This document shows positions 14,691-45,413 of a stretch of 64,000 nt of DNA, piece by piece. A program made the translations under genes and the position numbers. The notes beneath the pieces were generated by a model, which was given only the letters and a program-made list of their open reading frames with translations, did not search any database and had not been told where the DNA came from. The stretch's first letter is position 1, and each line of letters starts with the position of its first letter. Source of the DNA: Marsupella aquatica (lineage: Eukaryota > Plantae > Marchantiophyta); contig OZ316899.1 in NCBI GenBank assembly GCA_973895155.1, forward strand, positions 310,001-374,000. The letters are read 5' to 3'.

Positions 14691-15688
14691 CACTCATTTT
14701 GCCTTACAAGTGGAGCAGTGCAGTGATTTATTAACATATAGTTGTGTATTGTGCGGTATGGAAGGGGGCATGCCCCTTACCCGCTTGCGATCTGCATATT
14801 TACATCGTACAGAATGAGCGTCAAGTTCAGAAGGGGGCAACGCCTTATCGAAAGCAGGGAGCAAAGCCGCCCCCAAGGGAGTGAATAAGTGGTGGACCTT
14901 GCCACCCAACACCCTCACCTATCACAGCACGCACGCCTAAGTGCCCTTGGTGCCCGAATGCCTCCACAAAATACCTCGAGCAAGCAACTTAGTGCCCCTT
15001 GGACCACCAGCGGCCCCTCCCATACAAAGCCGCACTTGCCCTCTAACACGACCGCTACTCAACAGTCCTCACTGTCTGCACAAGCAACCAAGCGTCTTGA
15101 TAAGTAACCATTCAGGATCTAGATCTCCCAAGTCTAGCATCCTAACTCAAGCTCAACAAACATTGGTAAGTAGGTTAGCGATAGGTCCTCCCGATGCCAT
15201 AAGCCGGAACCAGAACCAACACCCACTGTTCATCCATAACTACTCCTTCCTTGGGCGCAGCCCCGAGTTGCCCCTTGTACCTATCCATCACCAACCGATT
15301 GTCGTGCCTCCAGGACATGCTCATGGCCCAAATAGCGTAGCTTGTCCTAAAGCTCATCCCAAGCTTGTCCCTACACGTTGGGACTAGGATGGCCCTGACT
15401 TTAGCAACCAAATCCCGGTTCTTGCCCCACTGATGGTCTAGGGGCCAAGTACCCTTGGAACTCAACCTCCATGCCTACTTGGCATTGCCTCCCCAATGCA
15501 AGCTCCTCTGAACGCGGCTTGGCTGCTATTTTGGCAGGATTTGGCAAGCGGGCGAGATAGCACCCTCAAACCTCCCACGGACCTATCTGAGCTCGGGATG
15601 ATGTAGCCCTTCTCAAGATATTTCCAACGCACCCAAAAAGTCCCCCAATGGACTTCTTATTGGGAAGTTATCGTCGTTTTCGTTTGGC

Positions 15689-15732
15689 GTTTAGGGTTTA
15701 GGGTTTAGGGTCCTAAACCCTAAACCCTAAAC
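15689..15732. repeat. Perfect head-to-head telomeric inverted repeat
   Basis: GTTTAGGGTTTAGGGTTTAGG-GT-CCTAAACCCTAAACCCTAAAC: 21-bp arms, 2-nt loop. Confidence 0.95.
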
Positions 15733-16343
15733 TCCCCTCATATATGCTTTTGGAGTCCTGCCACCCCCGGACCAACTTTGGTCCCCAAACATTTGGCCCC
15801 CAACCTGGACCCTATCTTGCATGTCTGGGCGCGCCACCAACTAGCAACGCCCATAACTTCTCAGTTAGGCGTCCGCAAGCGGAGTGCTTTAGCCCATTGC
15901 GATCGGGCCGGCCCAGTGCTTGGGCCCTCAGATCTCATTGCCACTTGGGGCCCCCAATTGGTCAAACCCGGATCGGGCCATAACTCGTACCCAAACGTTG
16001 TCGCGAGGACTTAAAGTTAGGGGCTCCTCGGGCAAACTGTGCATTTCTGGCTGCGATTGGGACAGGCGACAAGCACTTTTCAGAGCAAACTCTCACTCCT
16101 TTATTTTTTTTACTTTTCTCACAAAGGTTACAATGGGCGCCCTCGAGTAAGCTTGGCCGCAAGAGTCTGGTAGCTGGCCCTACGGCGGGCAGCTACCTCT
16201 AACTTGTCAAGCTGAACTCCTCAAGTGACTATCTACTCAAAATCTGACGGAAAAACTCTCCTCCTTAGCTCACAAAACCAAAACTTGACTAGCTACTCCA
16301 GTAGTCTAAAACAACTCTCACGGAACTCGGGTCTGGACCAACG

Positions 16344-18780: not shown

Positions 18781-19542
18781 GTGCATTCTTCATCCCTAGA
18801 CCCTTATCATTCCAGGCCACCTAGCTCTCATATTAGACCCTGGATTGAACAGAATGATAATAGGTGGTTTGGTCTTAAACCCTCCCAAGCTGGAGCAGCT
18901 GGATTTGTGAGGAGTGTTGAGATTCCTTTGGGGGATTGTATCTCCATGGATGCCCTGGAGGATCATGTGGCGACACCTTTTGAGAACCACTTTCGTGAGG
19001 ATATCGGGGACCGGAGGGAGTTGGACCCAATGAACATTGAGGATAATTTGAATAGTCAAGAATCGGGAACACTTAAGCCAAGCTCTGACACTGTGAAGAA
19101 GAAGGGATGCGTGAAGGCTCACTTGGGTGATTTGTCTAGTGAAAACCGGGCTGGCGATGTTGTTGCGGAGGTGTGTATTCCTCTGCTACATAGGATTGCA
19201 AACCTCTCAGTGGAAGATTGGCCTTCCCAATTACATACTACAATCGAATGGTCCTTAGAGGAGGCAGCTGAAATGGTCCAGGAACTTTTCAATTGCTCGA
19301 TGATGTGTTACTTTACTGATAGACCTCCTTTGCTACCTACATTCAGATTTTGGGTCAACAAGACCTTTGTCGAGGAGATGGAATGGCTTGTGACGCAAAT
19401 TAAGTTTGTAGGAAAGAAATTTTACATGGTGGTCTTCAAGCATCCTGAGCATTGGGATTTTGCACTTGCCAATGCCCCTTGGTTTGTGGACTGCAAATTT
19501 GTCTTTACATTTCCGTGGGACCCCTCTTTTGACATCAGGAAT
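18781..19542 (+). pseudogene. LINE ORF1 (DUF4283-like), split by the CACTA insertion; resumes at 30413
   Basis: KFVGKKFYMVVF...ALANAPWFV...FPWDPSFD motif before the insertion. After the right TSD the sequence gives PVWIKIP (one frameshift), the motif expected next in L1 ORF1. Confidence 0.78.
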
Positions 19543-19559
19543 CACTACAACACTATGCA

Positions 19560-20090
19560 CCTCTTTTGCGAACCACCACCCTTCGCATCATACAAAGGAA
19601 ACAAAATCCAAAATACCCAATTTGCGAACTTACTCGCATCGCAACGTCTTCGCTACTTCCCATCTCAAATTCTTCGCAAACGGCCCTTCGCAACTACTTC
19701 GCAACTTGCGATTCTAAATACGTCGCAACATCTCTGCAACGTTGCAACGGCACTGTCCTTGCAAATATTGAGAAACGACACATTTCATTATTTTGCGAGA
19801 ACAAATGAATCGCTCGCGTTGCGATAACATTTACATCGCAATTTCCGATGTTAAATTTCTCTATAACTTGCGATGCAAACAAACTCGTAAGATTGCGAGA
19901 AGCGGATGACCGCTTTGTTGCGAAGGCATTTAACTCGCAAACGTGTGGAGAGGAAGTCTTCGCTAGGGTTGTGATTTAGACAACATCGCAAGTGTTGCGA
20001 TGCGTTTCTCCTCGGAATGGTTGCGATACGTTCACCGTGGCTCTTTGAGATGGGGGTTGGTTCTCAAAAGCTTCGCAAAATGTATATTTC
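19560..20090. repeat. Left subterminal TTCGCA/TCGCAA motif array of CACTA-1
   Basis: Dense direct and inverted TTCGCA/TGCGAA/TCGCAA copies. Confidence 0.85.
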
Positions 20091-20320
20091 ATGGGTTTTT
20101 GTGTATTTGGGTTAGGGTGAGGGTGAGGGAGACCATTCATGGGTTTTGAAGGAGGGAGGAAAGTGATGTTGACCTAGTCTGCCGCAATTAAAATGGCATT
20201 ACTGAAAAAGTACAAAAGTTACAAAATGGAAGGGTAAAAACCCTTAGGTAAAGTGCCACGGCCATGCATGCTGATCGCTATACATGTGAACTCGATGTAA
20301 GTGCTCTAGCTACAACCTGT

Positions 20321-22503
20321 CTACATCGAGCTAGAAAGGAGTGTTCCTGCCCCTCCTTGCCTTCTTCCCCTTGGCCTTCTCCTTGCCCTTGTGTGCTCTT
20401 GGGGGGGTGCAACCTGGACTTCCTCCTCCTCTTGGTCATCCTCGGGGTCACCCTCCTCCTCATCCTCATCCTCATCCCCACCTCCACCGCCCTGGCTTGC
20501 CGCGCTACCACCCCCAGCACCACTGGAACGTGCTGATGCAAATGACTGGTCTCCAGTGCTAGTTGGCCTGGCTTGAGTAGCAGGAGCTGTGCTCCCCTCC
20601 CCTGTCCCCTCCACATCCTCATCACTACTATCGGTGCCACCCTCTGTATGGGAGTCACCATCCTCCCCTCCCTACTTCCATTAGCAAACCAGGGTGTCTG
20701 TTAGTCTCATATTCTTTACAAGTGTGAACAAAAGAGATATTCATTCAAAATTGCAATGAATGTAATAACCTAAAAATTCTCACCAATAATTCATCAACTT
20801 GCTGAAAGAGATGCTCCTTCCCATGTTTCTGGCCCACCTCCATCTCAGTCGCCGTAATCTTCCTCTTGTACCTCTTGTACTAAGCCAAAACAAAACCAGC
20901 ACAATTGGGTTAACACCAACCCATAACCCGATTCACATGGCTTCTAAAAATTAGGGGGTTTGTTGGGGCTGGTGGGGTGGTGCATCAAGGTTTTGGGGTT
21001 ATGGAGGGTGGCATATATGGGGAAGACCCTCAAAGAACACTTAAACGATCGGAAAATTTAAAAATTCAAATTTTTGAAATTTTGCGAAGGCGCCAGCTTC
21101 GCAATCATAAGGACAATTACGTTTGCGAAGCTGGTTGCGATGCAAACGTCTTCGCAACGCCTTCGCAAACGTAAGCAAAAAAAGGGCATAATAAGGTTTG
21201 CGAAGGATTTGCGAAGCTACCCTCATCGCAAATGTATCGCAAACTCTGTCATGGCAAAAACCCGAGAGGGAAGCAACTGTACGTGACCTAATCTGACACA
21301 ACAAGTCTAATTGTAACTACTTGGTGGAAATGCAAGAAAGAGTTGGCTCATTGCAGGTGTGTTGGAATAGGAATTGGAGTAGCAAGAAGTCAAGGGAGGA
21401 GAGGGAGGTGCACTCACGAATGCTGCTTTGAGGCCGGGGAGGCCACCTTGACCCAGCCTGTGGGTGATGTTGGGCTTGTCTCGGACTCGCTCAGCTGCCT
21501 TCAGGAACTTGTTGGGTGGATCGCCTACTTCTGCTACAACCTGCTGGAGCTGGGCTACCTTCTGCTCCATCACCTTCAGGTCCCAGACAGACTTCCCGGC
21601 CTCCTTTGCCCTTCGAGCCTTTGCCAACTTCTCTGTGAAATCATTGAGGAGCCTGGCTGCTTTCAACTTCACCTCTGTCTGGTAGAAGGCCTGCCAGATA
21701 TCTTCTGAGAATTGCAGCGGCCTCTGCAAATTCCTATACTCCTCCAAATCTCTAAGGTGAGACCTGATCTTCATTCTATCATGGTATCTAGCTTGTGACA
21801 TGGAGTTTGAAATTTTGTCAGCAAGCCACTGTGAATCCATCTCTCCTCCATTTTGAAATGCATCTTTCACCTGATTGATGACTCGCTTCTGCTCTGCCTT
21901 TGAGCGAGTGCCCCACTCGACTCCTCTTGCAAAATTTGTGGATACAATGTGCCTGATTGTGCTCTTGGCCCCATTGTAAGCAAGCTCGGTGGGAATCCCC
22001 TCATCCTCTAAAGTAATCAGAGGCAGCTTCCTCCTTGCTGCCTCCTTCTTTCTTTGCTCCTCCCTCTGTTTCCTGATCAGGTCTCTCTCATCTTTCCTCC
22101 TCTTCTTTTCCAATGCTTGAGGCGAGAGCACTCCAGCCTGAGCTCTCTCGTCCCTCTTTTGCTTCCTCTCAGCAGCCGCCTGCTCTGCTGCCTTCCTTGC
22201 ATCCTCCTCCACTGCTGCTTGCCTTGCAGTGAGACCTGCTTGCAAGGCTTGGCCCAGAAGGGCACTCAATGATGCCACCCCTGCTGGACTGGTGAAATCA
22301 ATTTGACTCAACTGTGCAACCAAAAAATGCTCATCCACAATCGCCTTCAATCGATCTCCCCCCCCTCGGTTGCCTCCGCTGCTGCCAGAAGCTCCTCCAT
22401 CACCACCAGTCCCCTCTCCGCTTGCCATCGCTCCGCCCTTGCCCTCGTTGCTCTCCTCAGGCCTGAATGAACTGAATCCGCCTTGTCCGCGCTCGGCAAT
22501 CAT
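20321..22503 (-). CDS. Intact TnpA-like second CACTA gene, 510 aa; exons 22503-21418, 20879-20784, 20671-20321
   Basis: Phase-0 GTGAGT, GTGAGA and TAG/AG junctions give 1533 nt without a stop. Coiled-coil N-terminus, WGTRSKAEQ...W..FY...ITHRLGQGG..GL..F|YKRYKRKIT segment resembling Transposase_24/TnpA, acidic tail. Family call by motif only. Confidence 0.72.
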
Positions 22504-23160
22504 AAGGATTCAAAATATTGGGCTTTGCGATTCGTTTTGCATCGCAGTTTGCGATGCATTGGCCTTCGCAAAAAGCTTCGCAAATTCTATCTTTGCGAAG
22601 CTTCAAGATTCGCAAAAGCCTTCGCTATTTGGTTTTGCCATAACCCCCGTCTCGCATGCGTATTTGATGTGTTGTTAGGGATACTAAGGGGGCTTATGAA
22701 CATTAAATGGGGTAGATGTAGAGGATTATGTTGCATTTTAGTGGGATGTGATGAGATAAGGATTGGGGGGGTTAGAAAATTGAAGGAGTTATATTGCAGG
22801 GTAAGAGGAGGGGGTTTGGCCTGGTTAGGGGAGGGTTTCTTTTGTGAAGGTTGGGCTTAGATTGGCTTAGATACGAGGGGTTTTATGTTTTGGGTTTGTA
22901 GGGGGGTTTTATTTATGAAGGTTGGGGTTATATGTATTGGAGGGTAAGAGCTAGGAGGGGTTTTATGTTTTGGGTTTTGGGGTTTAGGCCAACTTAGGAG
23001 GGTTTGAAAGAGAGGTTTCAGTTTTATAGTATCTTGGGTTACTTTTATGGTATCTTAGGAGGGTAACCAAGAGGGGTGGCATATAATTATGGTAGAGAGA
23101 AGCATAGGATGGTTGAAGGGAATTGACCATTTAGGTTTTTGCTAACTTCATTGGCTTATG

Positions 23161-24210
23161 CTTTAGAGTTCCCCAAGGGTCTATGGTGGGTTTTTATTGC
23201 ATGACACTCACCTTTCACTTGAAGCGGGATGAGGTTTTGGTTTTTATGCTAACAATTGAGGGAAATCCCATGTAATCATGATCCAGTGCAGGACCATCAC
23301 TGCTTCCTCAACTTTTGTCTAATGCATATGCATTGTGGGAACCCGGACATCTAAAAGGTATATTTAAACATGTATGTTAGCAGGGTTTGATAAAGAGATT
23401 GTTCATAAACCTTGCCCTTCTTTGTTGTGCAAGAATATCTATATGCACATGTTTGGGGGTCTACAACTTGAGAGAAGCTAATGGCTATCCAAACTTACTT
23501 TTTTGTTTCCAGTATTTTCCTCGTGCTTCTAGATTCAACTCATGTTCAATGAGCCACACGACCTACAGGCACTATTGAGTCCGGATCTCATTCAGGTAAT
23601 TATTGTCCAACTTCATTCTGGGCTTAGGCCTTTAGAGTTTTCCCAGGGGTCTAGGGTGGGTTTTTATTGCATGACACTCACCTTTCACTCGAGGGGGGAT
23701 AAGGGTTTAGGGTTTAGGGTTTTATGCTAACAATTGAGGGGAAAACCCATGTAATCATGATACAACGCAGGGCCAACACTACTACCTCAACTTTTGTCTA
23801 ATGCATATGCATTGTGGGAACCCGGGCATCTAAAAGGTATAACATCATGTATACAGTCAATGTTGTTAGTACAGATTTTTATGCTTGCCCTTCTTTGTTG
23901 TGCCATGATATATGTGGGTAAATGTCTAAGATTCCACAACTTGACGGCTGCTAATTACCATCCAAACTTACATTTTGTTTCCAGTATTTTCCTCCTACTT
24001 CTAGATTTGGCAAATGTTCCAAAGCCACGTGACCTATAGGCATTGTTGAGCCCGGGTCTCATTCAGGTAATAATCTAACCTCACTTAGGACATAGGGTAT
24101 TACAATTTTCCCAAAGGTTATAATGTGGTTTCTTCTTGCATGACACTCACCTTAATTTGGGTTTCATGCTAACAAATATAAAAGGGTAATAAAACCCCAT
24201 GTATAAACCA
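23161..24210. repeat. About 470-bp tandem duplication (2 copies plus partial third) between the divergent CACTA-1 genes
   Basis: CTTTAGAGTT..GGTGGGTTTTTATTGCATGACACTCACC at 23161 and 23630; CTCAACTTTTGTCTAATGCATATGCATTGTGGGAACCCGG in both; TCTCATTCAGGTAAT at about 23585 and 24056. Confidence 0.88.
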
Positions 24211-24276
24211 ACCTAATTGTTTTTTGAGTTCATTTTTTTTAAAATCGCTTTATATATGGCCTAATTTTTCCTAATC

Positions 24277-25476
24277 ATGCCCTACATGCAATGTAATGTG
24301 GCAGTGGATATGTCCTCTTCCTCTGAACTATCCAGTAGTGAGTACTCCTCCGATGACGATATACCCCCTCCTCCTCAGCCCGAGGTTACCGGTCCTCGTG
24401 GTCCACCCCGAAGACTTTGTGACTGCACCAGATGTGTGGGCCAAATTTCTCAAAAATCTTATGTGTGTGCTCAACATATTGAGAGATATGGACGTCATAG
24501 AGGTCTTACTCCCGGGGCTTCTTCATCCCATATGGTAAGTTTGTTTCAATTGATTGCCGTTCTTTACTGTTATTTTTAGAGGTGAATCAATGTTTACACA
24601 TATGGTTTACACATTTGGTTGTTTGTGGGTGTTTGCATGGAATAGGGATCCAGTATGCGTAGATTGGTGACACCACCACCCTATGTCCCATCACAAGGAG
24701 TTTTAGATGCTATAGGCAATGCACTTTCACAAGCCTTGGGTTTGGGAATTAGTACCAGTCATGGGACAGAAGGGGAACACCCTCATGTGCCCACTGAGAC
24801 ACGAAGACCCCGGTCCAGGCCCCAATCCAACAGGAGGCCACGAGCACCCAATGACCCATCCAAAACACTAGTTCAGGGTAGGTAGGGTGTTTGTTCATTC
24901 ACTGGCAAGTGTGCCTCTATCATCAAGGATTGGGAACCTATCACTCTTGGCTTGCCTTATTTTACAGATTTTGATGAGGAGATTGTGGTTTGGGGTAGAC
25001 GTTGGATTGTGAAAACTTCCACACTTGGAGAGAGACATGGATATGGAGTATTTGCTTGTGAGGATATCATCATGGATGAGGAGGGTGGGTCAAGTGTTCG
25101 TGGTAGAGAGGGTCCTACTTTGTTCCCATACGGTGGACCCATCTACAAGAGAAGACATTGGAACATGATCCTTGCACAACATCCTGAGTGGAAAACATAT
25201 GCTCTAGAGATGGATACTTTTGATGGTAGCACTAGAAGGTATAGTGAGCAGCGGGTGATAGATGGTGATCCCATACGTAATGGGAATATTGCTGGTTTCA
25301 TAAATAGTACTGTGGGGACTCGGCCCAAGCGTAGGGCCAATTGTGAGTGGGTTTTTACTGATGGTCCAATGCCGGCACCATATGGCACGACATATCATAA
25401 GGACCATTGCTTAGTTCTTGCTACTAGGACCATTAGAGCAGGAGATGAGTTATTCACACACTATGAGTGGGATTAG
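24277..25476 (+). CDS. CACTA-encoded SET-domain protein (SET-1); exon 24277-24534, then 24646-25476 with an in-frame TAG at 24883-24885, or a 90-nt intron 24878-24967 (332-aa product)
   Basis: SET motifs in order: GYGVFA, LFPYGG, TY, IDG, GNIAGFINS...ANC, LVLATRTIRAGDELFTHY. GTAAGT donor at 24535 and TAG acceptor at 24645 are phase 0. N-terminal CDCTRC-x11-QHIERYG motif. Confidence 0.82.
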
Positions 25477-25708
25477 GAAATCATGTCCTTTATCCTCTTG
25501 CACCTATTTTGGACTTCCCATTTACTATTATATATATGGCCTTTGGGCTCATTTTGGAGTAATAAGGTTTTAGCCCATGCATTTACTTTAATTCTTAATG
25601 TCTTGAATGAATGGTGTTAAGTCTATTTTAATTTGTTGTACTTGGTCAAATATACATGAGGAGGTTTTTTGGTTGTAATGTGCATAGAATGCGCAACCAT
25701 CTCAACAA

Positions 25709-28700
25709 ATGTTACCACGAAGGTTGAGAGCAACATATCGGGAGATGGGTATGCCAGAAGAGGGAGAACCATCAGAGGGTGATTCCTCATCAAGTAATGA
25801 TGTAGGTGGTGCTGATGAGGAAGCCGCACCTCGGACTGATGACCAGGTCATGCATGATCAAGATAGAGCCATGGATGACTTCATGGTTGATTGGTTTGGT
25901 GCCGATGTTGAGGATGATGTGCCTCACATTGGTGATGAGGTTGGCCCTTCAAATGACCCACGGCCACAACATACTCCAGAGGGACAACAACAATGGAAAG
26001 AGGCAGAGGAACATGCTCGAACACCTATTTTTGAGGGTGCTCGGTTGAGCCGTCTTTCTGCCATATTGGGGCTCTTGAACATTCAAGCCAAACACAAGAC
26101 AAGCAATTCTATGTTATCAGACATATTTGAATATTGTCATGACTTGATGTTACCCTCGGAGAATGTGTTGCCAGGGACCTGGAAGGATGCAAAGAAGGTT
26201 CTCTCATCCATTGGCATGGATTACCATATTATTCATGCCTGTGTGAATGATTGCATGTTATTTCACGGGGATACAGCCCATATCACAGAATGCACAGTGT
26301 GTCATGAGCCACGGTATGAGCCAAACATGCTAACCCAGAAGGTACCAAGGAAAGCAGTTCGTTGGTTCCCCATAATTCCTCGCTTGTTGCACATGTATAG
26401 ATGTTCTGACTTGGCCGAGTTGATGGTATGGCACAAGAAACATCGTTCGGAGCCCCGTGTCATGCAATTACCAGTTGACTCTCCTGCTCATAAACATGTG
26501 GAATCAACATGGCCAGATTTTGAGCGTGACCCTCGGCATGTGCGACTGGGGTTGGCATCAGATGGAGTTAGCCCTCATTCACTTGGAGGGAAGGGGAGAC
26601 CTACATCGGTCTGGCCTGTGGTTCTCATGAATTACAACCTTCCACCATGGTTGTCCATGAAAAAGGGTTTTTTGTTGCTATCTTTGATTATCCCAGGGCC
26701 AAAGAAGGTGAAGAACATGGACACCTATTTGACATTACTGGTTCAGGAACTCCAGAAATTATGGGAAGGAGTATGGGCATATGATGGTCGAAAGACTACA
26801 GGGGGTACCCCACGGGTTTTCAAACTCAGAGGGGTTTGTATGTGGACCATGCATGACTACCCAGGTAAGAACTTTGTTGTTTAAATGCATCATATTCTAA
26901 TGCATGGTATCCCCTCATTTCCATGTGCTAATCCTAACATAATGTGTGTTTATATGACCAGGATTTGGCTTTGTGAGTGGGTTGCAAACCCAAGGCTACA
27001 AGGCTTGCTCCACTTGTGGCCCAAGCCTTGGTGATGTAGCCAAGTATTCATCACATCTTTGCAAGATTGTTTATCTTGGGCATACAAAGTTTCTTCCAAT
27101 GGGACATCAGGTGAGGCGTGACCCACTACTATTTTCCTCTATTGATATGCCCTTTGGTGACGAGCGTGATGTACCTGAGCCAACAACTTTTACACACTGG
27201 AAAGACATGGCTGCAAGAGTGGCAGACCCAGAGGATCCCATGCAATTTGACGGTAGTGGCTTGACAAGGTGGAGTATATTAACCACTTTGCCCTATTGGG
27301 GTGAGTTGAAGATCCGCCATCTATTAGACCCCATGCACATTGAGGGAAATGTGGGAAAGGCTTTGATAAAGGCTTTCTATGGAGAGAAAGACACTAACTT
27401 CAGGGAGGCTTGTGAGGATCTTGAGATGCATCCAGACGTGTGGGTCATAAGTGATCCTATCACAGGGATCGAGCATCGACCTTCAGCTCCATGGGTGCTT
27501 CCTATTGGCCAGAGAAGAGAGTTTCGGAATCGCATAGGAGACATGCAGTTTCCTACTGGTTATGGTGCCAATCTCCGAAAGGCCTTTGGGATGGAGGACA
27601 ATCATAAGTGGCCAAGGTATCTCAAGACACATGACTACCATAGGTTATTGCAGCACATATTGCCTGTGGCCATAATAGGTTTGGCAAGTGAAGAAGTGCA
27701 AGATGCCCTTTGGTCATTGGGAAAACTATTGAGATGGGTATGCTCTAAGGAGATATATACTGATGAGATCCCTGGGATGGAGGTTTTGGCAGCAGAGGTG
27801 GTATGCAAGTTGGAGAAGGCCCTTCCTCCTTCCTTTTTTGACTGTCAAGTGCATTTACTTGTTCATCTTGTTCATGAGGTGGCCATTGCAGGTCCTGTGC
27901 ATTGTCGGTGGATGTATTGGCTAGAACGATACATGGCAGTGTTAAAAGGTTATGTACGTAACCGTGCACGGGTTGAGGGAAGCATGGCTACAGGATACTT
28001 AGCAGCTGAGAGTATGTTCTATTGTAGTAACATATTGGCCACAATTGATTGTACCTCTCCCCGTACTTGGGTAGAGGAGAGGGAAGATGAAGAGGATCGT
28101 TTAACAGGTGCTAGGAAAACTCGCATGTTGACACCAGTGGAGGTGAAACAACTGACCACATTCATGTTGAGTAACAACACTATCATGGAAGAATGGAGGG
28201 ATTTCTATGAGGATGCCAAAAGTAACAGCACAAGTACCTTGACTATATGAAGGAGAAGTTAGTTGAGGTGGATGACATGGTGGTCAGGGGAGAGAGTGTA
28301 TTACATTTTCTGGCTATCACAGATGATGTTCGTACCATTGTTCATGGTCCCTTGAGAGTGGTTACAACAAGGACAGCAATGTGGACACAAGGAAGACATT
28401 TCAGGTGATCTCCATCTACCTTAGTAACCTTTGATTTGAATCACTTGGTTTAATTTAATTCATTTGTAATACAAGCACGTATATTGAAGAGGCAGATTCT
28501 TGGTGTGTTCAATTAACTGGAATATGTTTGTGTCTATTTTTGTGTAACATATCCTTATGGTTTGATGGATTTTAGGATTTCTTCCCTTGATGAGAAGAGG
28601 GGTCGTACCTTTGATTGTGGAGTTCAAGGACAATTCTCTCAAGATTCCCGCAGCAGTCGCCATGACACAAATATTATTCGAGATGTTGTGCCACATTATG

Positions 28701-29062
28701 GAAAGGTAGAAGAGATTCTAGTGATATCTTATGATGCACAATCAAAGTTTGAAGAGTATGTCTTCAAGTGCAAGTGGTTCAAAGTGAACCTTGCAGGTAA
28801 CAATCCTACTGTGGTTCAAGATGAGTGTGGATTTACACGACTGAAGACGTCTGCCACTAGTTTCCAGCCATCTCATTGGCAAACATCAGAGCCGTTCACT
28901 TTTCCAAGTCATGTGGAACAATGTTTCTATATTCCATACCCCCCAAACCCAGAGGAATGGTCACTTGTCATCACATATGTGCCACGGTCTCGTTCAATCG
29001 TTGGGGAAAAGCCTGATATTCTGGTTGTGTCCCAACCTGAAGATGATGAGGACCAAGTTTGA
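25709..29062 (+). pseudogene. CACTA transposase (TnpD: Transposase_21 + DUF4218 + DUF4216); introns 26865-26961 and 28405-28575; frameshift near 28230
   Basis: IHACVNDCMLF, CTVCHEPRY, WFPIIPRL, RHVRLGLASDGVSP, WPVVLMNYNLPPW, IIPGPK, HDYPG|FGFVSG, LDPMHIEGNV, LKTHDYHRLLQ, HLLVHLVHEV...GPVHCRWMYWLER, EPFTFPSHVEQCFY. Confidence 0.93.
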
Positions 29063-29859
29063 GGGGTCTGTGTTTGTGGATATATAGCTACACGGATATA
29101 TAGTTAGATTTGATGATATGAAGATTTCTCTTCTTGGTAGAATGGAGAAATATGTGCTTCTCAATTATCAATAAACTTATGTTTTGTAAGTATATCATTT
29201 TCAAATGTTGTTTTCTATATCTCCCATCCCTACCCCACACTCACCACACCTTTTGGTAGACTTTATGCAAAGAAAACTCATGTTGCTTGTAGTCCTCTAT
29301 CCTCCATGCTTTCCTAATCCCCCCCTAGCCGTTCTCCTTATTACTTGTACCCACCTCCCTCCTCCTTTCTTTCATTGTCTGTCCCTCTTATTAAACCCTT
29401 CTTCCTCCTTCCTCTCCTTGTCCCAACCCCTTTCTATTTCAACCCTATACTTTCCTTACTTTCCACCCCTGTCCCCCACTCTTACCTATACAACCTAGCT
29501 TCTCTCCTCCCTCCTAAACCTATACCCTTAAACCTCCCTCATTTCCTTGTCCCTCTCTAAACCAATACCCTCCCTCCTTTCCTTGTCCCTCTCTAAACCC
29601 TAAACTCCCTCCTTTTTATTTTCACTCCCTAAATCCAAACCCTCCCTAAAACTATATCTACATACCCTTCCTCCTCCCTCATTTCCTTGTGCCCCCTAAA
29701 CCTGTATCCTCCCTCTTGGATCCCTCCGTTCCTTGTCCCTCCTAGCCCCATTCCCTTCCTCCTCCTTTTCATTGTCCCTCCCTAAAAATTACATGTATCC
29801 ACCCTCCTTTACCCTCCCTCCCCAATCCCATTCCTTTTCCACCTCTTTGAAGCGCTCAT

Positions 29860-30400
29860 AATATTTTGCGAAACATCTTGCGAAACCCCTACACCCGCAA
29901 ACTCATCGCTACATTTGCGATACTTAACTGCTCCCTAATTGCCATCATCCCCTCATCGCAAACTTCCGAAGATACCACCATCTCAAAGTTGCAAAACCAA
30001 AACATTCACAAAATGAGACCCTAGACAGGCACAGGATTTGCGAGCCTATTACTATCGCAAGTTAGCCATTCCACAAACATCGCTCATTTGCGAGACAATA
30101 AGACTCGCAAAATATTTTGAGATGCTTAAATATTCGCAACTATTTAGTTTTCCTGCGCATCTCAATGAATTTGCGAAGCGGTAAAGATCGCTAACTTGTT
30201 CAATGGTAATTGCTTCGGAAATGTTTTGCGATACGTGAAGTGTCATAAAATGTTGCGATGGTCTAAGTTTCGCAATTATGTGTTGCGATGTGTGTAGATT
30301 TGCTAAGTGCGATGCGTATCGTATCGCAAGTTTAGCGATGAGATTAATCTTGCAAAGCTTTCTTCCTCTTGTAAAATGCCTTCGCAAAATTGGCAAATAT
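29860..30400. repeat. Right subterminal TTCGCA/TGCGAA motif array of CACTA-1
   Basis: Same motif as the left array, in both orientations; preceded by a C/T-rich tract at about 29340-29860. Confidence 0.85.
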
Positions 30401-30559
30401 GTAGTAGTGAATGAAAGCTACACATGCTACCTGTTTGGATCAAAATCCCATTCAGAGCATTATGTAGTTTGCTATGAAGAACCAAAATACATTTAAAGGT
30501 CTTCAAACTCAGTATTTGTTCCCATAAAGAACAAGATGGGGTTGGTTTGATAGATTTAA

Positions 30560-35284: not shown

Positions 35285-38200
35285 TTAGTTCTCCTCAATC
35301 GTTTCTATAATGTAAACTTTCACACTTTCCAAAACTCTCGCTGGAACTTTTACCTTTGCTTTTGCTTTTGATGTCCATCCGGTGATGGTTGAAGTTGCTA
35401 GGATCCAATCATTCGTGACTGGGGGAATGAGGTAATTGGGATCCCTTTCCCACGTTTGCTTTGAATTAAAGTAGTCCCGATATCTTTCTGATTCGGTTGC
35501 CAAACTCTTGCGATTAAGAGGGCGCCACCATTCAACTTGGAACTCTCCAACATGCGCATCGTTGGGATCTTTTACGACACAATTGATTGCTTTTGCAAGC
35601 CAAAATCGTTGCGGAATTCTGGTTTCAAATTCATCGGTGGGTCGAATAATAACAAATGTATTCTTTTTAATATCTTCTAGAGGACTAAATCTTGACCTCT
35701 CACACTCAGAAGGGTGTCCGACAAAGATTGTTTGCCTCTCTTCTTCATCTTCTTGAAGCTCTCTTTCCAGATTATGCATCACCCCATTGTCTTCGCTTGG
35801 GCTGGTATCCACGTTCTGACCATCCTGACGATACCCAATTCCATGGTTCGTTCGAGGCCAGAATCCATCAAGTAATGGATAATCTACCCCTGCTAGCGAA
35901 GGAGAGCAAAGTGTGTCCTGAAACACAGAAACAATGTTTTCCCAGTATTGAATCTCTGGACTTTGGAGACGATATCCCTCTGATGTAACATCCTTCCATG
36001 CAGTCTTCAGCCATGAGATATAATGGATCAAGTATTCCAAAATGTCATTCGCCTGCTTGTGAGAAGGCTCCATCCGCTTGGAATAAGGACTTCCAATTGG
36101 AAATTTGTATTGGTTTCTCTCTAAGTCAAACAACCAAATTGTTTGACCCTTTGTCGGTAGCCAAGGCGTATCAATTTTCTCTCGATATTGGTAGACTGGG
36201 ACATTCTCCTTCATTGAGAACAAGAATTGAACAGGGTTTAGGGTTTAAACTTCGCGGATGAACCTTGGAACCGGATGTTTCTTCTTGCACTCCCAAACCT
36301 CCGCCATCAAACCAAAAAATGTGGTAAGCTCTCGACTGTAGATCCTTATCCCGACTCTAGAGAAGAAGGCATCCACATCCTCATGAGTGTGCCCCACCAT
36401 CAAAAAGGAAAGAGTTATTGACTCAAACACTCCTCTTAGAACAAGCTCGCTACAGAAAGCCAGAACTGTCTGGTTCTTGTTATCCTTTCCCAAGTTATCA
36501 AGTTGAAGGTGGAGGTGTCGAGGAAGCGCCTTGAAGGGTAGCAATGTTGAAGGCTCTACGCGACTCTCGTGTGGCGCATTATCACCAAGCCCTGCAAAGT
36601 GAGCGAGAGAGATCTTTTTGGTTTCGAGGTATCCTACCTCAAAGGCACACCGATCCAAGAGGGATACAAAGATTGGATCTATGACATCAGAGGTGTTGAG
36701 AGCTAGATCGCCGGTCTTATCTCCCACAAATGATTCGAGATCACGAAATAACTTTGCAAGCGAAGCGACTGTAAAATCAGGATCGCTTGCCCACAAACCA
36801 GAAAGGGCAAAATGTGCATAAATTCCAGGCTCTCGTCCATATGTTAACATCCCCGTCAGCGTCATTGGTAGCGGGATTGATTTGCCTCCTTGGCTCTTGA
36901 GTGTAGAAGTCATTTTAGGGATTCCGGTCTTGGCTTGATCCATTTTATCGTGAATCACAGACAAATATTTGTCGGGCTCTTGGTCCGCCGCAAGTTTTGC
37001 TGCATAGTACATACTCCTGCATGATTGTTGTTCCAACATATGCCGTTTGTGCTTTGCCTTGATTTCTAAAATCTTATCCACCCGTTTCTCCCCCCGAAGT
37101 GTTTCTTTAATGGTCGTGCAGAGATCGCATTTTGCAAAGTTGCTCCGATCTTGGAATTGGAAATTGGGGAAATATTTATCCAAAAGCTTGTAGAAGGTTG
37201 TGAGAGAGGGCGAGTGAATACCCAGGTTTTTGTTAAGCTCGCAAGCCTCTTCAAAAACATCTTTTCTCCCGAAACTTATTGGTACCCTGAAAACAACTTC
37301 CTGCTTGCCTGAAACACCAATTTTGTGAAGATGTGGCATTGGTTTTGCACATTTCTGCAGGATACTTCGAATTGATTCTGTGAACAACACAACGTAGTCT
37401 TTGGTCTTGATGGTCCCTTCATCCCATGAACACCAACTTTTGCCCCCTCCATGTATCGTGAATACATTGTGTAAAATGTTCCTCGAGAAAATCCATGAAT
37501 ATTCCAGAAAGCTTCCTTGCAGATCCTGCTTCCCTTGAATACAATCATGCCTAAGGCGATGGTTTCATCATCACGACAGTGAAGATGATTGAGCACGTAA
37601 GTATGTTGCTCAACATGAGATAGAGCATAGTACTCTTCCCTAATGTCAGTGACAGTCTCACGGAATTTTCGTCGACAACAACTCTGTGAGCAACAATCAA
37701 CCCGATAAAGAGTATCTATGGACACCCGAGACATCTTTTGATTGCGTCTTTTCTCAAGTCATTTTCTCTCCTTCTGGTTTGAATCTTGAGGATTTCTTTG
37801 TTGATTGTTATAGCCACTTTTTGGCTTGATATATGAGAGAATTCTAACTCCCTCATCGTTACCATCATTCCAATCTAAAAGATCACTCAGACATTCCATT
37901 CCAGGCTCAATCCTAGTTTTGTTGATTGGCCATCGAACTGTGCATGGTGATCCATCAACAAATTGAGGGAACAAAACTTTTCCCAAGCCAGCTTCAATAG
38001 CTAGACTCAAAATGTTCACACCAACATGATCTTCCCCAACTCGCTCGTTGTTAATGGACGCGAGAGGATGTGGGTTTATGATGCAACCTCTTGCGAGCAA
38101 GGTTTCTCCATCATCCGCATAGAGAAGGGCAAACTTTTTGAACCATGTGCTACAATCTTTCAGATCCTCCGCAAAAACCTCTGTCCCCTCCAGTCCGGTG

Positions 38201-38550
38201 GCTGATTCAAAATTACCTTGAATATTGTCAACTGGGTCATCAATGACATAAGCTGACTCTGTTTGACCTCCAAGATTCATGTCATTTGCATGGCGGACAT
38301 CTTGCCGACCCCACAAAACAACGGAGTTCACCGACTCTCCTACTAGATCAGCTCCCGGATGTGGATACGGCAGCTGTGCGAGGTGAAAGAAAGCATTGTC
38401 CACCGCCACACTTATCCGTTCTGCTCCAAGCAACATAGAGTGGCAGGTGTCGGAAGGTAGAACACAAAAAACCTTTCCACCAGCAACTGGTTGTTCATTG
38501 ATAAGCAGGTGAACGACTTCTCCAGGTAGAAGTTGCGTTCTTGAAGCCAT
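35285..38550 (-). pseudogene. Sola-type (DUF7869-like DDE) transposase, about 1090 aa, with two N-terminal DUF8039/Tnp1-like domains; one TGA (37759), a frameshift (about 37400), and a TAA in a telomere-like insert (36245)
   Basis: FAKCDLC, HKRH, SVIHDKMDQ, HLHLQLDNLGKDNKNQ.V..F...LV..GVF..I...FLMVGHTHEDVDAFFS motifs. ORFs 38550-37759 and 37734-37276 are in frame; 37390-36245 and 36223-35285 are in frame. Element ends not resolved. Confidence 0.8.
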
Positions 38551-39520: not shown

Positions 39521-42500
39521 TATAGTTAAACCACATCCCAATGGGAAAGACTCAAGCTTGCACATACATTCACATACTAACACAATCACTAAAACAAAAT
39601 TGAAAATGACAGGAGAAAAACTGTACAAGAAACTGTACCGATGCAGTACCTGAAACAACAGAGCACGCTTTAACGACAGCCCCACCTCGGACTGAAGGCA
39701 CGAATGAGTCAGGTCTCAAACAATGACTTGGACGAAGTGGTCTGTCACGTTATATAGTGAGTGGGGGTGCGAGAATTTCAGACTAGCTTTCAACTCTACC
39801 AGATTGTCGTGTAGTACTTTTTTGTGGCGGCGTGGTGTGTGGTGAGCCTATGGACCGCTTGAGAGACATTGCATATCGTGCACTCGCACCACTCGTCCAT
39901 CCATCCGATTTTCCAGCCACATTGAGGGAGATAGACCGTGTATTTTGTAGGAGGAGGAGAGTGTTGAGGATGCACCCTATTGAGAGGGGAGTAGTGGTGA
40001 CCACTAGACCCCAATCGATTGACTCCCGTCCACCTAGGATTGTTCCGCCCCAATGCCCTTTTCTTGATGCATCGTTCCCGGGGCACCAAGACAGTTGCGA
40101 GGGAGAGCCTTGGACATCTTAAAGGACTCCTTCCCAACACAGTTTGGACTCCCTATGGACCTCCCGCTTCAAGAGCCTATTATAGTTTAGGACCGCCCAT
40201 GGGTCATCCTCCCCTCCACATTGGGGACTCATGTAGGACTTGGAGTATTTGCTCTTGTGGATATCGTGGTCCCTACCGGTTGTGCACCCAATGTTTGCCT
40301 CAGTTGTTTCCATTCTATGGGCCCAAGTATTTGGAGGCGAGATGGCGCATCTTGTCCCGATAGTGCCCAACCTTTAGTCGATATGACATGTCACTAAACT
40401 TGGACCCTAGGTATGCTCAAATTGATGGTTACCCTGTAGTATCACACTATGGACATAAATAAACATTTAAAATCCAAAACTTGGTATTCGTTCCCATGGA
40501 AGAACATGTAAGAAATGATTTTCTATGATTTAGTACTTATGAATGACTTAAGTAATAAAACACAAAGGTTGAGCCTTTTACTATGGTTTCTCAGCAAGGC
40601 ATAGTTTTAAATGTTTGCTTAACATTGTAATTAATCCGTGGACCCCCATGTTCATCCAGGAATGTGTGTTTGATGAAGTGAATTCAATTTTCAACAAGGC
40701 GGTAATCGACGGTTTTGAGTCTCCCGATGGTCTTGGTGTGTGCTCGTACAAAAGAAAACGCCCAAAATATAGAGGAGATTTATCAATGGAAGGTTGAATA
40801 TGGAGGAATTGAGTTTTTTGACGATTTTTGCTTACACATTGGAGAAATCGTGTTTCTATCATTCATGATTGATCGTTTGTGAGTTACATTGAGCATTATC
40901 GTCACAAGACAGACTGGAGAACAACACTTAGCTATTGGCAAAAGAGCGCTTGTCGATTCGGTGGGAAGAACACACAAAACAAACGAATCATCGCTTCACA
41001 TGAAGGATTTGTAGTTTTTTTATTTAAGAAAGCTATGGTGTGAGAGGGAGACCAACGATTGTAACTTTGACATAGAGGCTGCATTTGGCGTCAATCTGTG
41101 TTCAGAGTGAGCTAGCTTCAGTTGAAGACTAGAGGAATGCGAACAATTCAAGCCGGGAAGCAAGCATTATGGACAAGGGATGGCGACATAATCAAAGAAA
41201 TCAATTTTCAACGACTAAGTTTGTGACGGTGATGAGATTGTGATATCTCTTAATCGAGAAAGGGTTTCCAATGAGCCTCAGATTGACAAATTTTGTCAAG
41301 TTCCAAATGAGTTTTTGAATTTCTTTGCCTTTCCAATGAGTGTGAGTAAAAGAAATATTGATCATGAGTCCATGAATTCTTTTAGCTTTCCAACATTGAG
41401 TCCGACATTGACAAATTGTATGTCAGATTTTGTCACGATACTAAAGAGATCATGAGGTTTTCAATCTCTGCAGCTTTCTAATGTGTGGTCAACATTGAGA
41501 TTATTCGTCAAGAATTAGAGAGATCATGAGTATCTGAATTTCTCTAGCTTTCCAATGAACCTAACATTGATAGATTTTGTCAAGTACTAAGGAGATGATG
41601 AGTTTTTAATTTTACTTTAACTTTCCTTGAGTGTGACATTGAGAGATTTTATCAAGACAATACTAAAGAGGTCACGAGATTCTAAATCTTGATCTTGAGT
41701 TTTCCAATGAATCAAACATTAACAGATTTTATCAAGTACTAAGGAGATTGATTATTTAGTTTTACAATGTGAAGCCAAATGGGTTTTAACTATGTACATT
41801 TCTATTGGTTGGTTACTTTTTTCAAGCTTGCAAACAATTAAAAAATACAAGCATTTTGATATAAAACATTGATATATCTTTGACAAACATCAAAATGGTA
41901 ACTTTATTTTACTAAATGACATATCTCCCTTTGTACTTTGGTTTTTTTACGTTCAATATTTACGGCATGGCGTCCCAAAAATTACGTTGCTTTTGCCACA
42001 AAGAATGTGCACGTTTGTTATTGTTAAAAGTAGGATCATTCCTATTTGTGGCTGGTTGTGGTGATGTGGTGCAACCTCGTGACAGGGAATTTGCAAGAGA
42101 CCTCTCATGGGGGTCCGTAAAGAAAATTAACAAATGAAAACAATTAATAAAATACAATAAAATCTTGAGGTATGGTGAGGGAGTCTGGAAAATACCAAGG
42201 TAACTTCTCAACATCACTTAATTTGAGATGATTTAAAGTGAAGAATCCGCAAGGACATTTCTGGAATGAAATGCTTTACTAGGATGGTTAATTAAAGTGC
42301 TGTCAACACATCTCAACCTTTCCATCCAAGGTACTAAGTTAGGATTAACAACCAATCACTTCAGCATCCAATCGGTATTTTGAGTCACGAATATCAAGCA
42401 CCATCATCAACAACTTAAAGTCGTAGATAATTGGGTGATAATATTCTTTGCACCTCGTGCACAAGCAATGTTATGCCAAAAATATATGCATCAAGAACTC

Positions 42501-43400
42501 AAGAATGTATAGCCTTCACCAATTAAGGAATCTATCTCCACACATCCAAAAGATTCATCAATCACAAAGTTTTACTTCTCTGGTCTGAAATCTCAACATT
42601 CAAACACAAGGAAGGGGAAGAAATCCTCTGTATATTGTACTCATCAACAATATAGAGTACTTGCTACAAATGGAGGTAACAAAGTTACAATCTTGCAACT
42701 GAGCGCTCATGAAATTTCTTCACACAAGAAATGACATGAAAACTACTACTTATATGCTAGCAGGAACTAAAGGGAAAAGAGATAATGAAAGGACATACCC
42801 TTTCATATCTTAAGGGTCATAAACTAAAGTAAAAAATATGAAAATATGATATAAGAGTACTCAAGGTTCACTAGAATGTTCATGGAATGAAAAACTAACC
42901 AAAAGTTATCCCTAATGTAAACTGGAGTAAAAGTGTTTTTGCACTTTTGTGACAAAACTAATAAATATCAACTTTGTCTGAATTTTAATTTCTAACATAA
43001 AGGTCAGAATGAGGTGAAACGTTTTTAGGTGGAAGAATTCCATACATGCTACATGCTGGAAAAATTTCAGACTTTTTTGAGATGTCTAAGTGCCTTAATA
43101 AAATAGGTGAAAAGTGTTGTTGGATAAAAAATACACTTTTTTCGGAAAATTTTCTAAGTGTCGGAAGCGCCTTTGCGCTTTGGCATAGTAGCGCCGTTGC
43201 GCCTTTGCGCTTTTACGCTTAAGCAAAACTAAAAATGCTATAACTTCTAAATTACATGTTGGTTTAAGCCGATATTTTCAGGGTATGGTCTGCTACATAA
43301 GGGCTATCTCTTGAAAAAGTATGAAACTTTTCTAACTACTTTAACTATTTAACAAAAAATGGTGGAGATTGACTAATCCTGAGTTGAAGGATGGAGTAGG

Positions 43401-43994
43401 TCAATCCTCCTGAAGTAGTGCTGACTGGTCCGGTTGTTGAAAACTCCTGAATGTCTCAGTTTGAATCACATCTCGAAGGAAATCCATAACCTGTGTATCA
43501 TGTCGATCAAATGGAAGAGATCTGATTTGTCGTTCAGCATTGAGAATGTTCACCTTGCTAGCTTGCATATAGATGCCGACTAGATCATAACTACAACAAG
43601 TGGTATGATAGTTGCGTGGAAACTTGTTGATGAAGGTGTCAGAGTCCTTGGCAAGTGACAGAAGTGGAGTGACACTAGGTAACAGTTCCCGCCACTTTAG
43701 GGTGTAATGAGCCAACCGCTGGGAAGTGATGTTGTTCCAGATTCTCTGGCTCTCAGCAACTGGTGTGATAAATTGTTGAACAAGAAAAGGTTCCTCTGGT
43801 AGGACACCATGGTCGACTTGATATCGTTTGTTGGTTTGTCTCAAAAAGTTGATGATGAATTCCAAGACATAGGCAGGTAAATTCCCGAAGTATGCCAGGG
43901 CTAGATCTCCATTCTCTAGTACAATGTGTCCAACCAAGATCATGACAGCAAGAATAGGACAAAAATATTTAGCCTTTGTCCAGATCTCATCCAT
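43401..43994 (-). CDS. Unknown protein, second coding block of the insert; homologue at 31986-32375
   Basis: 197-aa ORF with a clear by-eye alignment to the second copy; homology extends upstream across a stop. Confidence 0.55.
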   Translation of the reverse strand: MDEIWTKAKYFCPILAVMILVGHIVLENGDLALAYFGNLPAYVLEFIINFLRQTNKRYQVDHGVLPEEPFLVQQFITPVAESQRIWNNITSQRLAHYTLKWRELLPSVTPLLSLAKDSDTFINKFPRNYHTTCCSYDLVGIYMQASKVNILNAERQIRSLPFDRHDTQVMDFLRDVIQTETFRSFQQPDQSALLQED

Positions 43995-44450
43995 CTCTGC
44001 TATCTCTAGGCGGGTGACATCCTTTAGATGAAGCTTCAGGATATAGAGACATTCAACTCTCTTTTTATGATAGTACTGCCAAAATTCTAAAATGGGAGGA
44101 GTTCTAAGGTTTGAAACTTTGACAAACTCAGCAAATTGTGTAATATTCTCCTTAGGGGTTTTAGGGTCAATATGGAGTGTAGGAATGAAATGGACTAGGT
44201 TCAGGCAGAGTTACAGAGGCTGCTCTTAACCTCTCAATAGAGTCAACTATCTCCTCAGGTTCATAGATCAATAAGTTGCTTAACTTATCAATAATTTGCT
44301 GATTAGATTCTACTCTCAGTTCATCAGCCGTTGGTTTGCTGAACATGAAGGGTCTCTTATGGGATCTCATAGAAGGGGTCAAGCTATCTCTAGATAAATT
44401 TTGAGTTGGGACTGTAGGTGATCAAAGAGTAATAGGGACAGATATGTCAA

Positions 44451-45413
44451 CTACAGATACAGGAGGTGGGGGAACCTCTGGTTCGGATGTATACTCATCG
44501 AGATTGGAATTGAGGGGGGTGTAAAGTCTTCTATCCTGATTGAGATCTTCAAAAGGGGATAGAGGGTTATCAGGAATTGGTGAAGAGGTACTTCTGGGTT
44601 CCACAAGTGGTTCTCTATGGGTAAGAGGGGTAACCTCTGAACAGATAGGGGGAACCTCTGGTTGAACTTCATCAGCATCTTCTCCTTCAGTATCCTTGTT
44701 TCCTGATTCACTAAGATCAAATTCATCAAGCAATCTGATCGCTCCTCTTGTTTGCCTGGAAGTAAGCAATTCCCATGAAAGTACAACTGGCAAAGATAAG
44801 CAGGGAGAGTAGTGAACTCATCCGTTTTCACCTTCTTTACTTGAGATAAAGTAACCTGTCTTAGCAACAAGGCCCAATTTATCTGAGCAACTCCCTTCCA
44901 ACTTGCCACAATAGTATTGGCAAGTGACACAGGTATCATATGTGGTCGAATAGGATGGAGAATTGGAATCAAAAACTCTAAAATGATTTTAAGAGTATAA
45001 TCGGTGCACTGGTCCATTTTCCATCCATGGCGAACGTTTCGAGTTCCAGAAAAATAAGGTTTCGCAGTCTCTCCTTGTCGTGAGTGTAGGTTGTCTCCTT
45101 CGGCGGGACAGCCAAAAGCATCAGCAACAAATTGCATAGTCCAGAATTCTGGATTCGCCCAAGCAGTTCCCACCATACCAACTTCGATTCGTGCCCCATC
45201 ACTGAAATCCTTCAGAAAACTCAATGAAGTTACGGACCAAGGCAGAGTGAGTAATTTACTCAGGTGCATGACCGCCAATGCTTCCTTCAAAACGTGCAAG
45301 CTTCTTTTCATCATAGGGTATGTCACAGGGACGGCCCTAGGTAAAGGAACTCCTCTTGCAGTCATCTCTCCCCCTTCGTCTGCCATAGTAATAAGCCCGG
45401 TAATAAGGAACAA
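44451..45413 (-). CDS. PMD/Athila-ORF1-like retrotransposon extra ORF (frameshifted 3' end)
   Basis: LLTLPW, VADAFGCPAEGD, YF.G...GW...C...LEFL.PIL.P, INWA motifs, distantly matching the central domain of 56241-58619. Confidence 0.65.
   Translation of the reverse strand: MFLITGLITMADEGGEMTARGVPLPRAVPVTYPMMKRSLHVLKEALAVMHLSKLLTLPWSVTSLSFLKDFSDGARIEVGMVGTAWANPEFWTMQFVADAFGCPAEGDNLHSRQGETAKPYFSGTRNVRHGWKMDQCTDYTLKIILEFLIPILHPIRPHMIPVSLANTIVASWKGVAQINWALLLRQVTLSQVKKVKTDEFTTLPAYLCQLYFHGNCLLPGKQEERSDCLMNLILVNQETRILKEKMLMKFNQRFPLSVQRLPLLPIENHLWNPEVPLHQFLITLYPLLKISIRIEDFTPPSIPISMSIHPNQRFPHLLYL

Follow-up and report, generated by a model that had tools for sequence, protein, structure and literature searches.

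In maize En/Spm, alternative splicing of a single transcription unit gives rise to two products, TnpA and TnpD, of which TnpA binds the subterminal repeats and counteracts epigenetic silencing. Land-plant transposons resist silencing by means of DNA-binding proteins such as TnpA and VANC, and we know of none that encodes a histone-modifying enzyme of its own. The subject of this work is a CACTA element in a 64,000-nucleotide stretch of the genome of the liverwort Marsupella aquatica (GenBank assembly GCA_973895155.1, contig OZ316899.1, positions 310,001 to 374,000 of the forward strand; this whole stretch is hereafter the window, and coordinates refer to it unless a contig is named). The element carries a gene for a SET domain, the fold of the lysine methyltransferases, directly upstream of its TnpD transposase, and the evidence as a whole makes it likely that this is an integral, selected accessory gene of a bryophyte CACTA lineage, encoding a transposase-type zinc motif joined to a SET domain.

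SET genes are known as cargo of other transposons. Red-algal Plavaka elements, which belong to the EnSpm/CACTA superfamily, carry PAG2, an N6-adenine DNA methylase together with a SET domain (bioRxiv 10.1101/2025.02.11.637652), HarbingerS elements and the MuDR elements of Phytophthora carry SET genes (Kojima and Jurka 2014, as cited in PMC12730594), and Helitrons have SET genes among their reported cargo. PAG2, which has been proposed to modulate element chromatin, is the nearest parallel, being a long-kept SET accessory gene in the same transposon superfamily. Judged by published description, it differs in belonging to a three-gene cassette in giant elements of 17-19 kb with Plavaka-type transposases, whereas in Marsupella the partner of the SET domain is a transposase zinc motif, the transposase is of the TnpD type, and there is no DNA methylase. 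HarbingerS and Phytophthora MuDR, as summarised in the citing article and likewise compared by description only, are also DNA transposons with SET histone-lysine-methyltransferase cargo, but belong to the PIF/Harbinger and Mutator superfamilies and to other hosts. VANC, from the Mutator-type VANDAL elements of Arabidopsis, is not an enzyme but binds DNA sequence-specifically and brings about the loss of DNA methylation (PMC5735166, via PMC12730594); as described there, it too is an element-encoded accessory protein, and one that acts on the epigenetic state of its own element, but it lacks a SET fold and comes from another superfamily. In primate SETMAR, a SET-mariner fusion, SET and DNA-transposase genes are also adjacent and share transcription, but SETMAR is a host gene arising from one transposase capture, whereas here the SET gene travels on a mobile element and is present in many copies. 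In the initial annotation, made from the sequence alone, SET was not known to be a described CACTA cargo. That view holds for TnpD-type CACTA elements of land plants, for which our literature search found no report of SET genes, but not for the superfamily, given the red-algal example. What is new here is the bryophyte hosts, the TnpD-type transposase, and the placing of a zinc motif and SET domain inside the transposase unit; the kind of cargo was already known.

The initial annotation had also placed the SET domain inside a CACTA element bounded by a target-site duplication, about 230 bp upstream of and co-oriented with TnpD, and measurement bore this out. The element, with CACTAC termini, spans 19543-30409 (10,867 bp), opening with CACTACAACAC at 19543 and closing with ...ATGTAGTAGTG at 30409, and is flanked by AAT at 19540-19542 and again at 30410-30412, a 3-bp target-site duplication. 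Its termini are inverted in the manner of CACTA elements (CACTACAAC at 19543 and GTAGTAGTG ending at 30409), with nine of the first ten bases of the 5' terminal inverted repeat (CACTACAACACTA, 19543-19555, plus strand) being the reverse complement of the right end, where the 3' repeat lies at 30397-30409 on the minus strand. Short subterminal repeats occur in both orientations at both ends, as clusters of TTGCGA/TCGCAA on the left (19566-20078, often as 25-nt TTTGCGA-N11-TCGCAAA palindromes) and on the right (29866-30387). Two internal clusters lie downstream (21082-21242) and upstream (22525-22615) of a minus-strand open reading frame (ORF). The window holds 69 such hexamers against a chance expectation of ~22, and 51 of the 69 fall in these four clusters.

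Three genes lie between the ends: the antisense ORF of 398 amino acids (21307-22503, minus strand), the SET gene, and TnpD (25709-29062, plus strand). TnpD is present as three open blocks (25709-26884, 26973-28250 and 28562-29062) separated by probable introns, and matches the Pfam families Transposase_21 (7e-39), DUF4218 (3.7e-34) and DUF4216 (2.7e-8). The other ORFs of the element gave no Pfam match to the TnpA-type Transposase_24 at E <= 10. With its target duplication intact and its TnpD blocks open, the insertion is recent-looking.

The SET gene occupies 24277-25476 on the plus strand, and its ORF pieces, beginning at 24277, 24655 and 24952, all share one frame. Exon 1 (24277-24534) encodes an acidic, serine-rich start followed by a zinc motif, C-x-C-x2-C...H...YGRH (24415-24498), and ends at a phase-0 donor, ATG|GTAAGT, which is found at the same position and phase in six lineages. 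The 111 nt that follow (24535-24645), running from GTAAGT to AG with an in-frame stop inside, are on sequence grounds a probable intron, and related contigs have a gap of 110-130 nt at this position. Exon 2 (24646-25476) encodes a basic linker resembling a nuclear localisation signal, a conserved pre-SET stretch, the SET domain and the stop codon at 25474-25476, after which a spacer of 232 bp leads to the TnpD ATG at 25709 on the same strand. An intact gene of this kind would specify a product of ~360 amino acids.

The window copy is itself a pseudogene, since an in-frame TAG at 24883-24885 stands where relatives have TGG (Trp), and position 24884 is G, restoring TGG, in all contigs from four public runs. 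The family is live, but this member of it has been disabled by one TGG-to-TAG change. A second intron at 24878-24967, which would have yielded a clean protein of 332 amino acids, was considered and dropped, because P0001 and all other relatives have conserved coding sequence there and the break is accounted for by the TGG-to-TAG change.

A phmmer search of 1.84 billion representative sequences recovered 89 proteins, all of one family, the named hosts among them being the liverworts Riccia sorocarpa and Calypogeia fissa. The SET gene immediately precedes TnpD, in the same orientation, in both copies within the window, in four Riccia loci (L001, L002, L003 and L007), in a metagenome contig (L004) and in four read-assembly contigs (L008-L011). 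A scan of Joint Genome Institute (JGI) metagenomes with an alignment of seven SET sequences added 25 loci, 42-91% identical to the window SET domain over the best segment; TnpD follows ~165-210 bp after the SET gene in all 13 of those that extend at least 300 bp past it, and three truncated SET copies were found without TnpD. The contigs with the closest SET copies are presumed to be of peat or moss origin. Spacing between the two genes is 165-230 bp in the subfamily of the window copy and 200-1,400 bp in distant elements. The SET ORF lies within the element ends and is conserved across copies and families, and its position and orientation beside TnpD have been kept in many independent elements, as expected of an element-borne gene. 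The family layout consists of the antisense 398-amino acid ORF, a two-exon SET gene and TnpD, all within CACTA ends, and the SET gene is an integral accessory gene of a bryophyte CACTA lineage.

Substitution patterns show that the gene has been kept by purifying selection over long divergence. Between subfamilies, the ratio of non-synonymous to synonymous substitution rates (dN/dS) of the SET domain is 0.21-0.33 (dS 0.42-0.72), well below 1, and the ratios for the rest of the unit are 0.06-0.17 for TnpD, 0.12 for exon 1, 0.24 for the linker and 0.17 for the antisense ORF; the intron and the SET-TnpD spacer are unalignable between copies. These values come from closer metagenome copies, which replaced distant pairs whose synonymous differences were saturated (pS ~0.7). 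Within the youngest group the SET ratio rises to 0.83, and the low values between subfamilies together with near-neutral change within this group indicate a functional transposon gene whose individual copies decay after insertion. Of the 12 SET-domain segments (exon 2b) that were compared, eight contain no stop codon. SET and TnpD distances are correlated (Mantel r 0.70, p 0.003), and both trees give the same supported Riccia clade.

Several observations weigh against this account of an integral, selected gene. The window copy cannot make a SET protein, owing to the stop at 24883, and the second copy in the window is badly degraded: the first part of its SET gene (40095-40435, plus strand), of the IDGYP subfamily, holds a stop, a frameshift and a second stop, and the last part (GYINN ... 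LIDYDWH and stop) lies at 45867-46061 on the same strand, adjoining a co-oriented TnpD (46232-55509) split by a copia-type insertion. Most members of the family are metagenome or read-assembly contigs, and the known hosts are Riccia and Calypogeia, with Sphagnum a probable third, in which case the family would span mosses and liverworts. In addition, the four public runs that cover the locus gave flat depth across introns and spacer with no splice joints, and behave like DNA; a search confined to RNA-Seq libraries listed no run.

The SET domain proper extends from 25039 to 25464 on the plus strand, with the motifs GYGVFA (25039-25056, containing GxG), LFPYGG (25120-25137), GFINS (25294-25308, with INS at 25297) and GDELFTHY (25441-25464, with ELFTHY and the catalytic tyrosine at 25447-25464). 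The ORF at 24952-25476 scores 29.1 bits against the Pfam SET family PF00856 (cut-off 22.4; E 1.4e-6), and of the 32 family members 29 match it at E <= 0.01 (best 2.9e-9). Modelling with AlphaFold2 from 32 relatives gave a confident SET fold (pLDDT 89.8, pTM 0.84). With Foldseek it matched SETD8/KMT5A, LegAS4 (26% identity, TM 0.60), MLL1/3 and NSD1 at probability 1.0 and TM 0.54-0.60, and ATXR5 was matched at the same probability; there were 156 matches in the Protein Data Bank (PDB) at E <= 0.001. Among reviewed proteins the matches, again at probability 1.0, were KMT5A, SET1, ASHR3 and ATX3/4, at 16-20% identity. On these matches the SET fold is not in doubt, and the low identities show that no SET domain group (SDG) class of the host is close. 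The best structural matches, SETD8/KMT5A (E 3e-7) and LegAS4, are compact SET domains like those of the window family, but with identities of 16-26%, different N-terminal flanks, and 7-20 extra residues separating INS from the Asn-x-Glu-Trp strand, the window family is a member of neither subfamily.

Less certain is whether the protein is an enzyme. In an alignment of 32 sequences that are 27-75% identical, the invariant or near-invariant columns are the glycines of GxG, LFPY-G-x2-Y, IDG, the serine of INS, Asn-x-Glu-Trp, and the glutamate and tyrosine of (D/E)EL-x3-Y; G24 is near-invariant, G26, G56, Y59 and E160 are invariant, and Y165 is present in at least 90%. The family thus has the GxG of the S-adenosylmethionine (SAM) binding site, the Y-x-G motif, and E-L-x-(F/Y)-x-Y with the catalytic tyrosine, but where canonical SET domains have N-H-S/x-C it reads (Y/F)-I-N-S and has no cysteine. 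The unusual INS and the lack of cysteine clusters on either side of the domain, both remarked on in the initial annotation, proved to be real, the former as a family-wide trait; the ORF ends three codons past the catalytic tyrosine. We think it somewhat probable that, when intact, the protein works as a SAM-dependent lysine methyltransferase.

One main competitor, which we regard as doubtful, is that the SET fold lacks catalytic activity and has been retained for binding or scaffolding, with a histone tail or a methyltransferase of the host as its partner, or to act as a silencing decoy. Catalysis is not assured, because three features tell against it: the histidine of the canonical NHS is an invariant serine throughout the family (the cysteine also being absent), the asparagine of INS is glutamine in one Riccia clade (4 of 32 sequences), and no post-SET region is present that could close the lysine channel. 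Similarity to solved SET domains is also marginal; phmmer with the window SET sequence alone found nothing meaningful among PDB sequences, and the best match of the family profile to solved structures, LegAS4, has E 0.001. Set against a dead fold are the GxG, Y-x-G and Glu...catalytic Tyr columns, which are invariant or nearly so, and the properties of the nearest structures. LegAS4, the closest solved relative, has lost the same histidine, its YINFS aligning with the YINS of the family and placing phenylalanine at that position; it is an active histone methyltransferase whose structure has been solved with a histone H3 peptide, so the missing histidine is compatible with a histone-binding SET enzyme. 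SETD8, the best fold match, is active without a post-SET cluster.

The zinc motif of exon 1 connects the protein to the transposase. C-x-C-x2-C...H...YGRH is the core of the Transposase-associated domain, PF13963, which stands at the start of angiosperm TnpDs. The window exon gave no match to PF13963 in Pfam; the homologous exon of L009 did so at E 1.1e-4 (22.7 bits, under the cut-off of 27.7), covering only positions 28-61 of the 74 in the profile, and that of P0016 at E 0.12. In hhalign, nine exon-1 sequences aligned with twelve angiosperm TnpD N-termini (79%, E 1.6e-5, 31 columns), the aligned core being the C-P-C-x2-C...H-L...G of the TnpD N-terminus. By Pfam, the TnpD blocks of SET-bearing elements contain no Transposase-associated domain, and the 1135-amino acid ORF of a transposase from a SET-less element (P0149) opens with the same short zinc motif. 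L008 has the zinc motif and the SET domain in a single ORF of 423 amino acids. The accessory protein therefore consists of a transposase-type zinc motif, a basic linker, a pre-SET stretch and a minimal SET domain, and most simply the SET exon can be read as lying between the ancestral first exon of the transposase and its body.

From this arrangement a shared use of exon 1 can be envisaged. The only conserved island, and the only 10-nt identity, in the SET-TnpD spacer is TGCATAG|AAT (25681-25690, plus strand, with the junction at 25687/25688), a candidate phase-0 splice acceptor 21 nt 5' of the TnpD ATG; its phase matches that of the exon 1 donor, and in five of eight lineages TnpD, which begins with a conserved LPRRLR, has an in-frame TAG, preceded by a U-rich tract, 21-33 nt upstream of that start. 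The donor of exon 1 and a single promoter could then serve two acceptors, giving either Zn-SET or, through TGCATAG|AAT, a Zn-TnpD product with the canonical transposase architecture. We hold this model of a SET exon between the ancestral exon 1 and the TnpD body, with shared promoter and donor, tentatively and at best as an even proposition. Two points count against it: the upstream TAG in five of eight lineages is weakly above chance, and in the window subfamily the conserved start of TnpD carries an ATG of its own, so that a separate TnpD transcript, or separate translation, is equally possible. The parallel with the TnpA and TnpD of En/Spm lies in the dense subterminal motif clusters and the possibly shared first exon; the differences are that no Transposase_24/TnpA homologue was found, that the second product here has an enzyme fold, and that alternative splicing is inferred.

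As regards function, a zinc module shared with the transposase might recognise the same DNA or partners, and it is a tentative proposal that it brings the methyltransferase to the element or to the transposition complex. A permissive chromatin mark laid down there would counteract host silencing, and marking of element chromatin, most plausibly against silencing, is a conceivable but rather unlikely role; weighing against it, the chromatin target and the direction of the effect are pure inference. The other main rival, which we judge improbable, is that the substrate is a transposition protein (TnpD, the antisense-ORF protein or a host factor), whose methylation would tune transposition. Many SET enzymes methylate non-histone proteins, the best fold match, SETD8/KMT5A, is named as an N-lysine methyltransferase, and the zinc module could mediate contact with a protein as easily as with DNA. 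The structural neighbours, however, are all histone methyltransferases, and the basic linker fits a chromatin or a non-chromatin substrate alike.

A further possibility, that the SET domain is part of the transposase itself in a SET-TnpD fusion, is very unlikely. Three Riccia sorocarpa gene models (P0041, P0133 and P0142), deposited as 'SET domain-containing protein' or 'Transposase', do join SET to Transposase_21, and the co-oriented ORFs, 165-1400 bp apart, may share a promoter and first exon. The three models nevertheless use three different junctions, two of which fall within the SET domain and remove its catalytic end, and are probably artefacts of gene prediction. Moreover, the aligned transposon-borne members have a stop ~3-30 codons past the catalytic tyrosine, the spacer has stops in every frame, and the window copy has no in-phase donor before the SET stop.

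A relative of the SET gene also stands apart from any transposase. In Calypogeia fissa it is a single-exon gene of 503-506 amino acids, with intact ORFs at L005:10001-11512 and L006:10001-11521, standing alone between genes for mitochondrial mL59 and an FtsH protease in two collinear regions whose flanks are 88-97% identical. Between the two copies the proportion of non-synonymous differences (pN) is 0.015 and that of synonymous differences (pS) 0.05, a ratio of 0.30. A search with the Calypogeia protein for named host orthologues returned only its own duplicate. Since the tree gave it no supported position, the gene may be either a transposon gene domesticated by the host or the host gene from which the cargo came. 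This stand-alone relative could be the donor in a passive, Pack-CACTA style capture of a functionless host fragment, and CACTA elements do pick up host fragments (PMC6379663), but such a capture is scarcely credible given that the entire domain has been retained together with a start, an intron and a stop of its own, at a fixed position and orientation in elements differing by 40-65% in protein sequence, that it shows dN/dS of 0.21-0.33 beside non-coding DNA that cannot be aligned, that it co-diverges with TnpD, and that the nearest host SDG fold matches are only 16-20% identical.

The antisense ORF is the third conserved gene of the element family. It belongs to no Pfam family, gave nothing in the protein atlas, and encodes a Gly/Ser-rich start, a coiled-coil-like middle rich in Lys, Glu and Arg, and a conserved C-terminal half. 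It lies upstream and antisense in seven of the eight related contigs with enough flank, and has 207 relatives, those in six Sphagnum species (S. troendelagicum, S. jensenii, S. compactum, S. fallax, S. balticum and S. tenellum) being 62-77% identical. It may be the TnpA counterpart of this lineage. The window protein has no similarity to the Riccia antisense genes upstream of SET. The ORF and its flanking motif clusters were also considered as a nested element, but no CACTA termini surround them. The wider family is very large and unannotated (one member is at L013:10055-11008), and neither a SET gene nor TnpD is found within 10 kb of one S. fallax copy. Two Calypogeia fissa relatives, P0279 and P0329, are 57-67% identical to the window copy and so as similar to it as those of Sphagnum; on sequence comparison this similarity between moss and liverwort suggests either that the element was transferred horizontally or that the assembly contains foreign DNA.

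Other features of the window and of the related loci complete the description. Directly 5' of the SET gene are three tandem copies, 83-93% alike, of a repeat of ~470 bp (23169-24153), which occupy the gap between the upstream motif cluster of the antisense ORF and the SET ATG and could be promoter or regulatory repeats. One of two short interstitial runs of the plant-type telomere repeat (TTTAGGG/CCCTAAA) lies inside this array (23691-23722); the other (15682-15739) is a head-to-head palindrome. In the second element, a 5.4-kb insertion (40436-45866) with minus-strand ORFs of 197-320 amino acids splits the SET gene between IDGYP and TGNL, and the copia-type retrotransposon in its TnpD (47521-52190, minus strand) retains open gag (517 amino acids) and pol (1039 amino acids). 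A row of minus-strand ORFs at 35285-38550 (263, 152, 381 and 312 amino acids), with a GHTHEDVD-like motif in that of 381, may represent another DNA transposon. Among the genes that plant DNA transposons often carry are those for Ulp-like proteases, and in Riccia a Peptidase_C48 (Ulp-like) gene of 977 amino acids lies antisense at L002:16473-19574, a few kb 3' of a SET-TnpD pair whose TnpD is truncated.

For genome annotation, the family carries a practical consequence. SET ORFs of this kind are filed as host 'SET domain-containing proteins', or within the fused Riccia models, and in this way inflate counts of host chromatin (SDG) genes. The stand-alone, selected Calypogeia copy may be a case in which a transposon gave rise to a host chromatin gene, or one that ran the other way. 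The family is high-copy and evolutionarily constrained, and occurs in bryophytes, probably including an ecologically important peat-moss genus. It comes with built-in controls, in the form of intact, stop-codon and SET-deleted copies within one genome and SET-less relatives with the zinc motif fused to the transposase, and so offers a natural system in which to ask whether a mobile element is able to determine the state of its own chromatin. The fullest scheme would make the SET exon a cassette in the first intron of TnpD, with Zn-SET recruited to TTTGCGA-N11-TCGCAAA to write an anti-silencing histone mark, and with the Calypogeia gene as a domesticate. We consider it improbable in its entirety, but if the cassette and the anti-silencing mark were true, this protein would be an enzymatic counterpart of En/Spm TnpA and VANDAL VANC.

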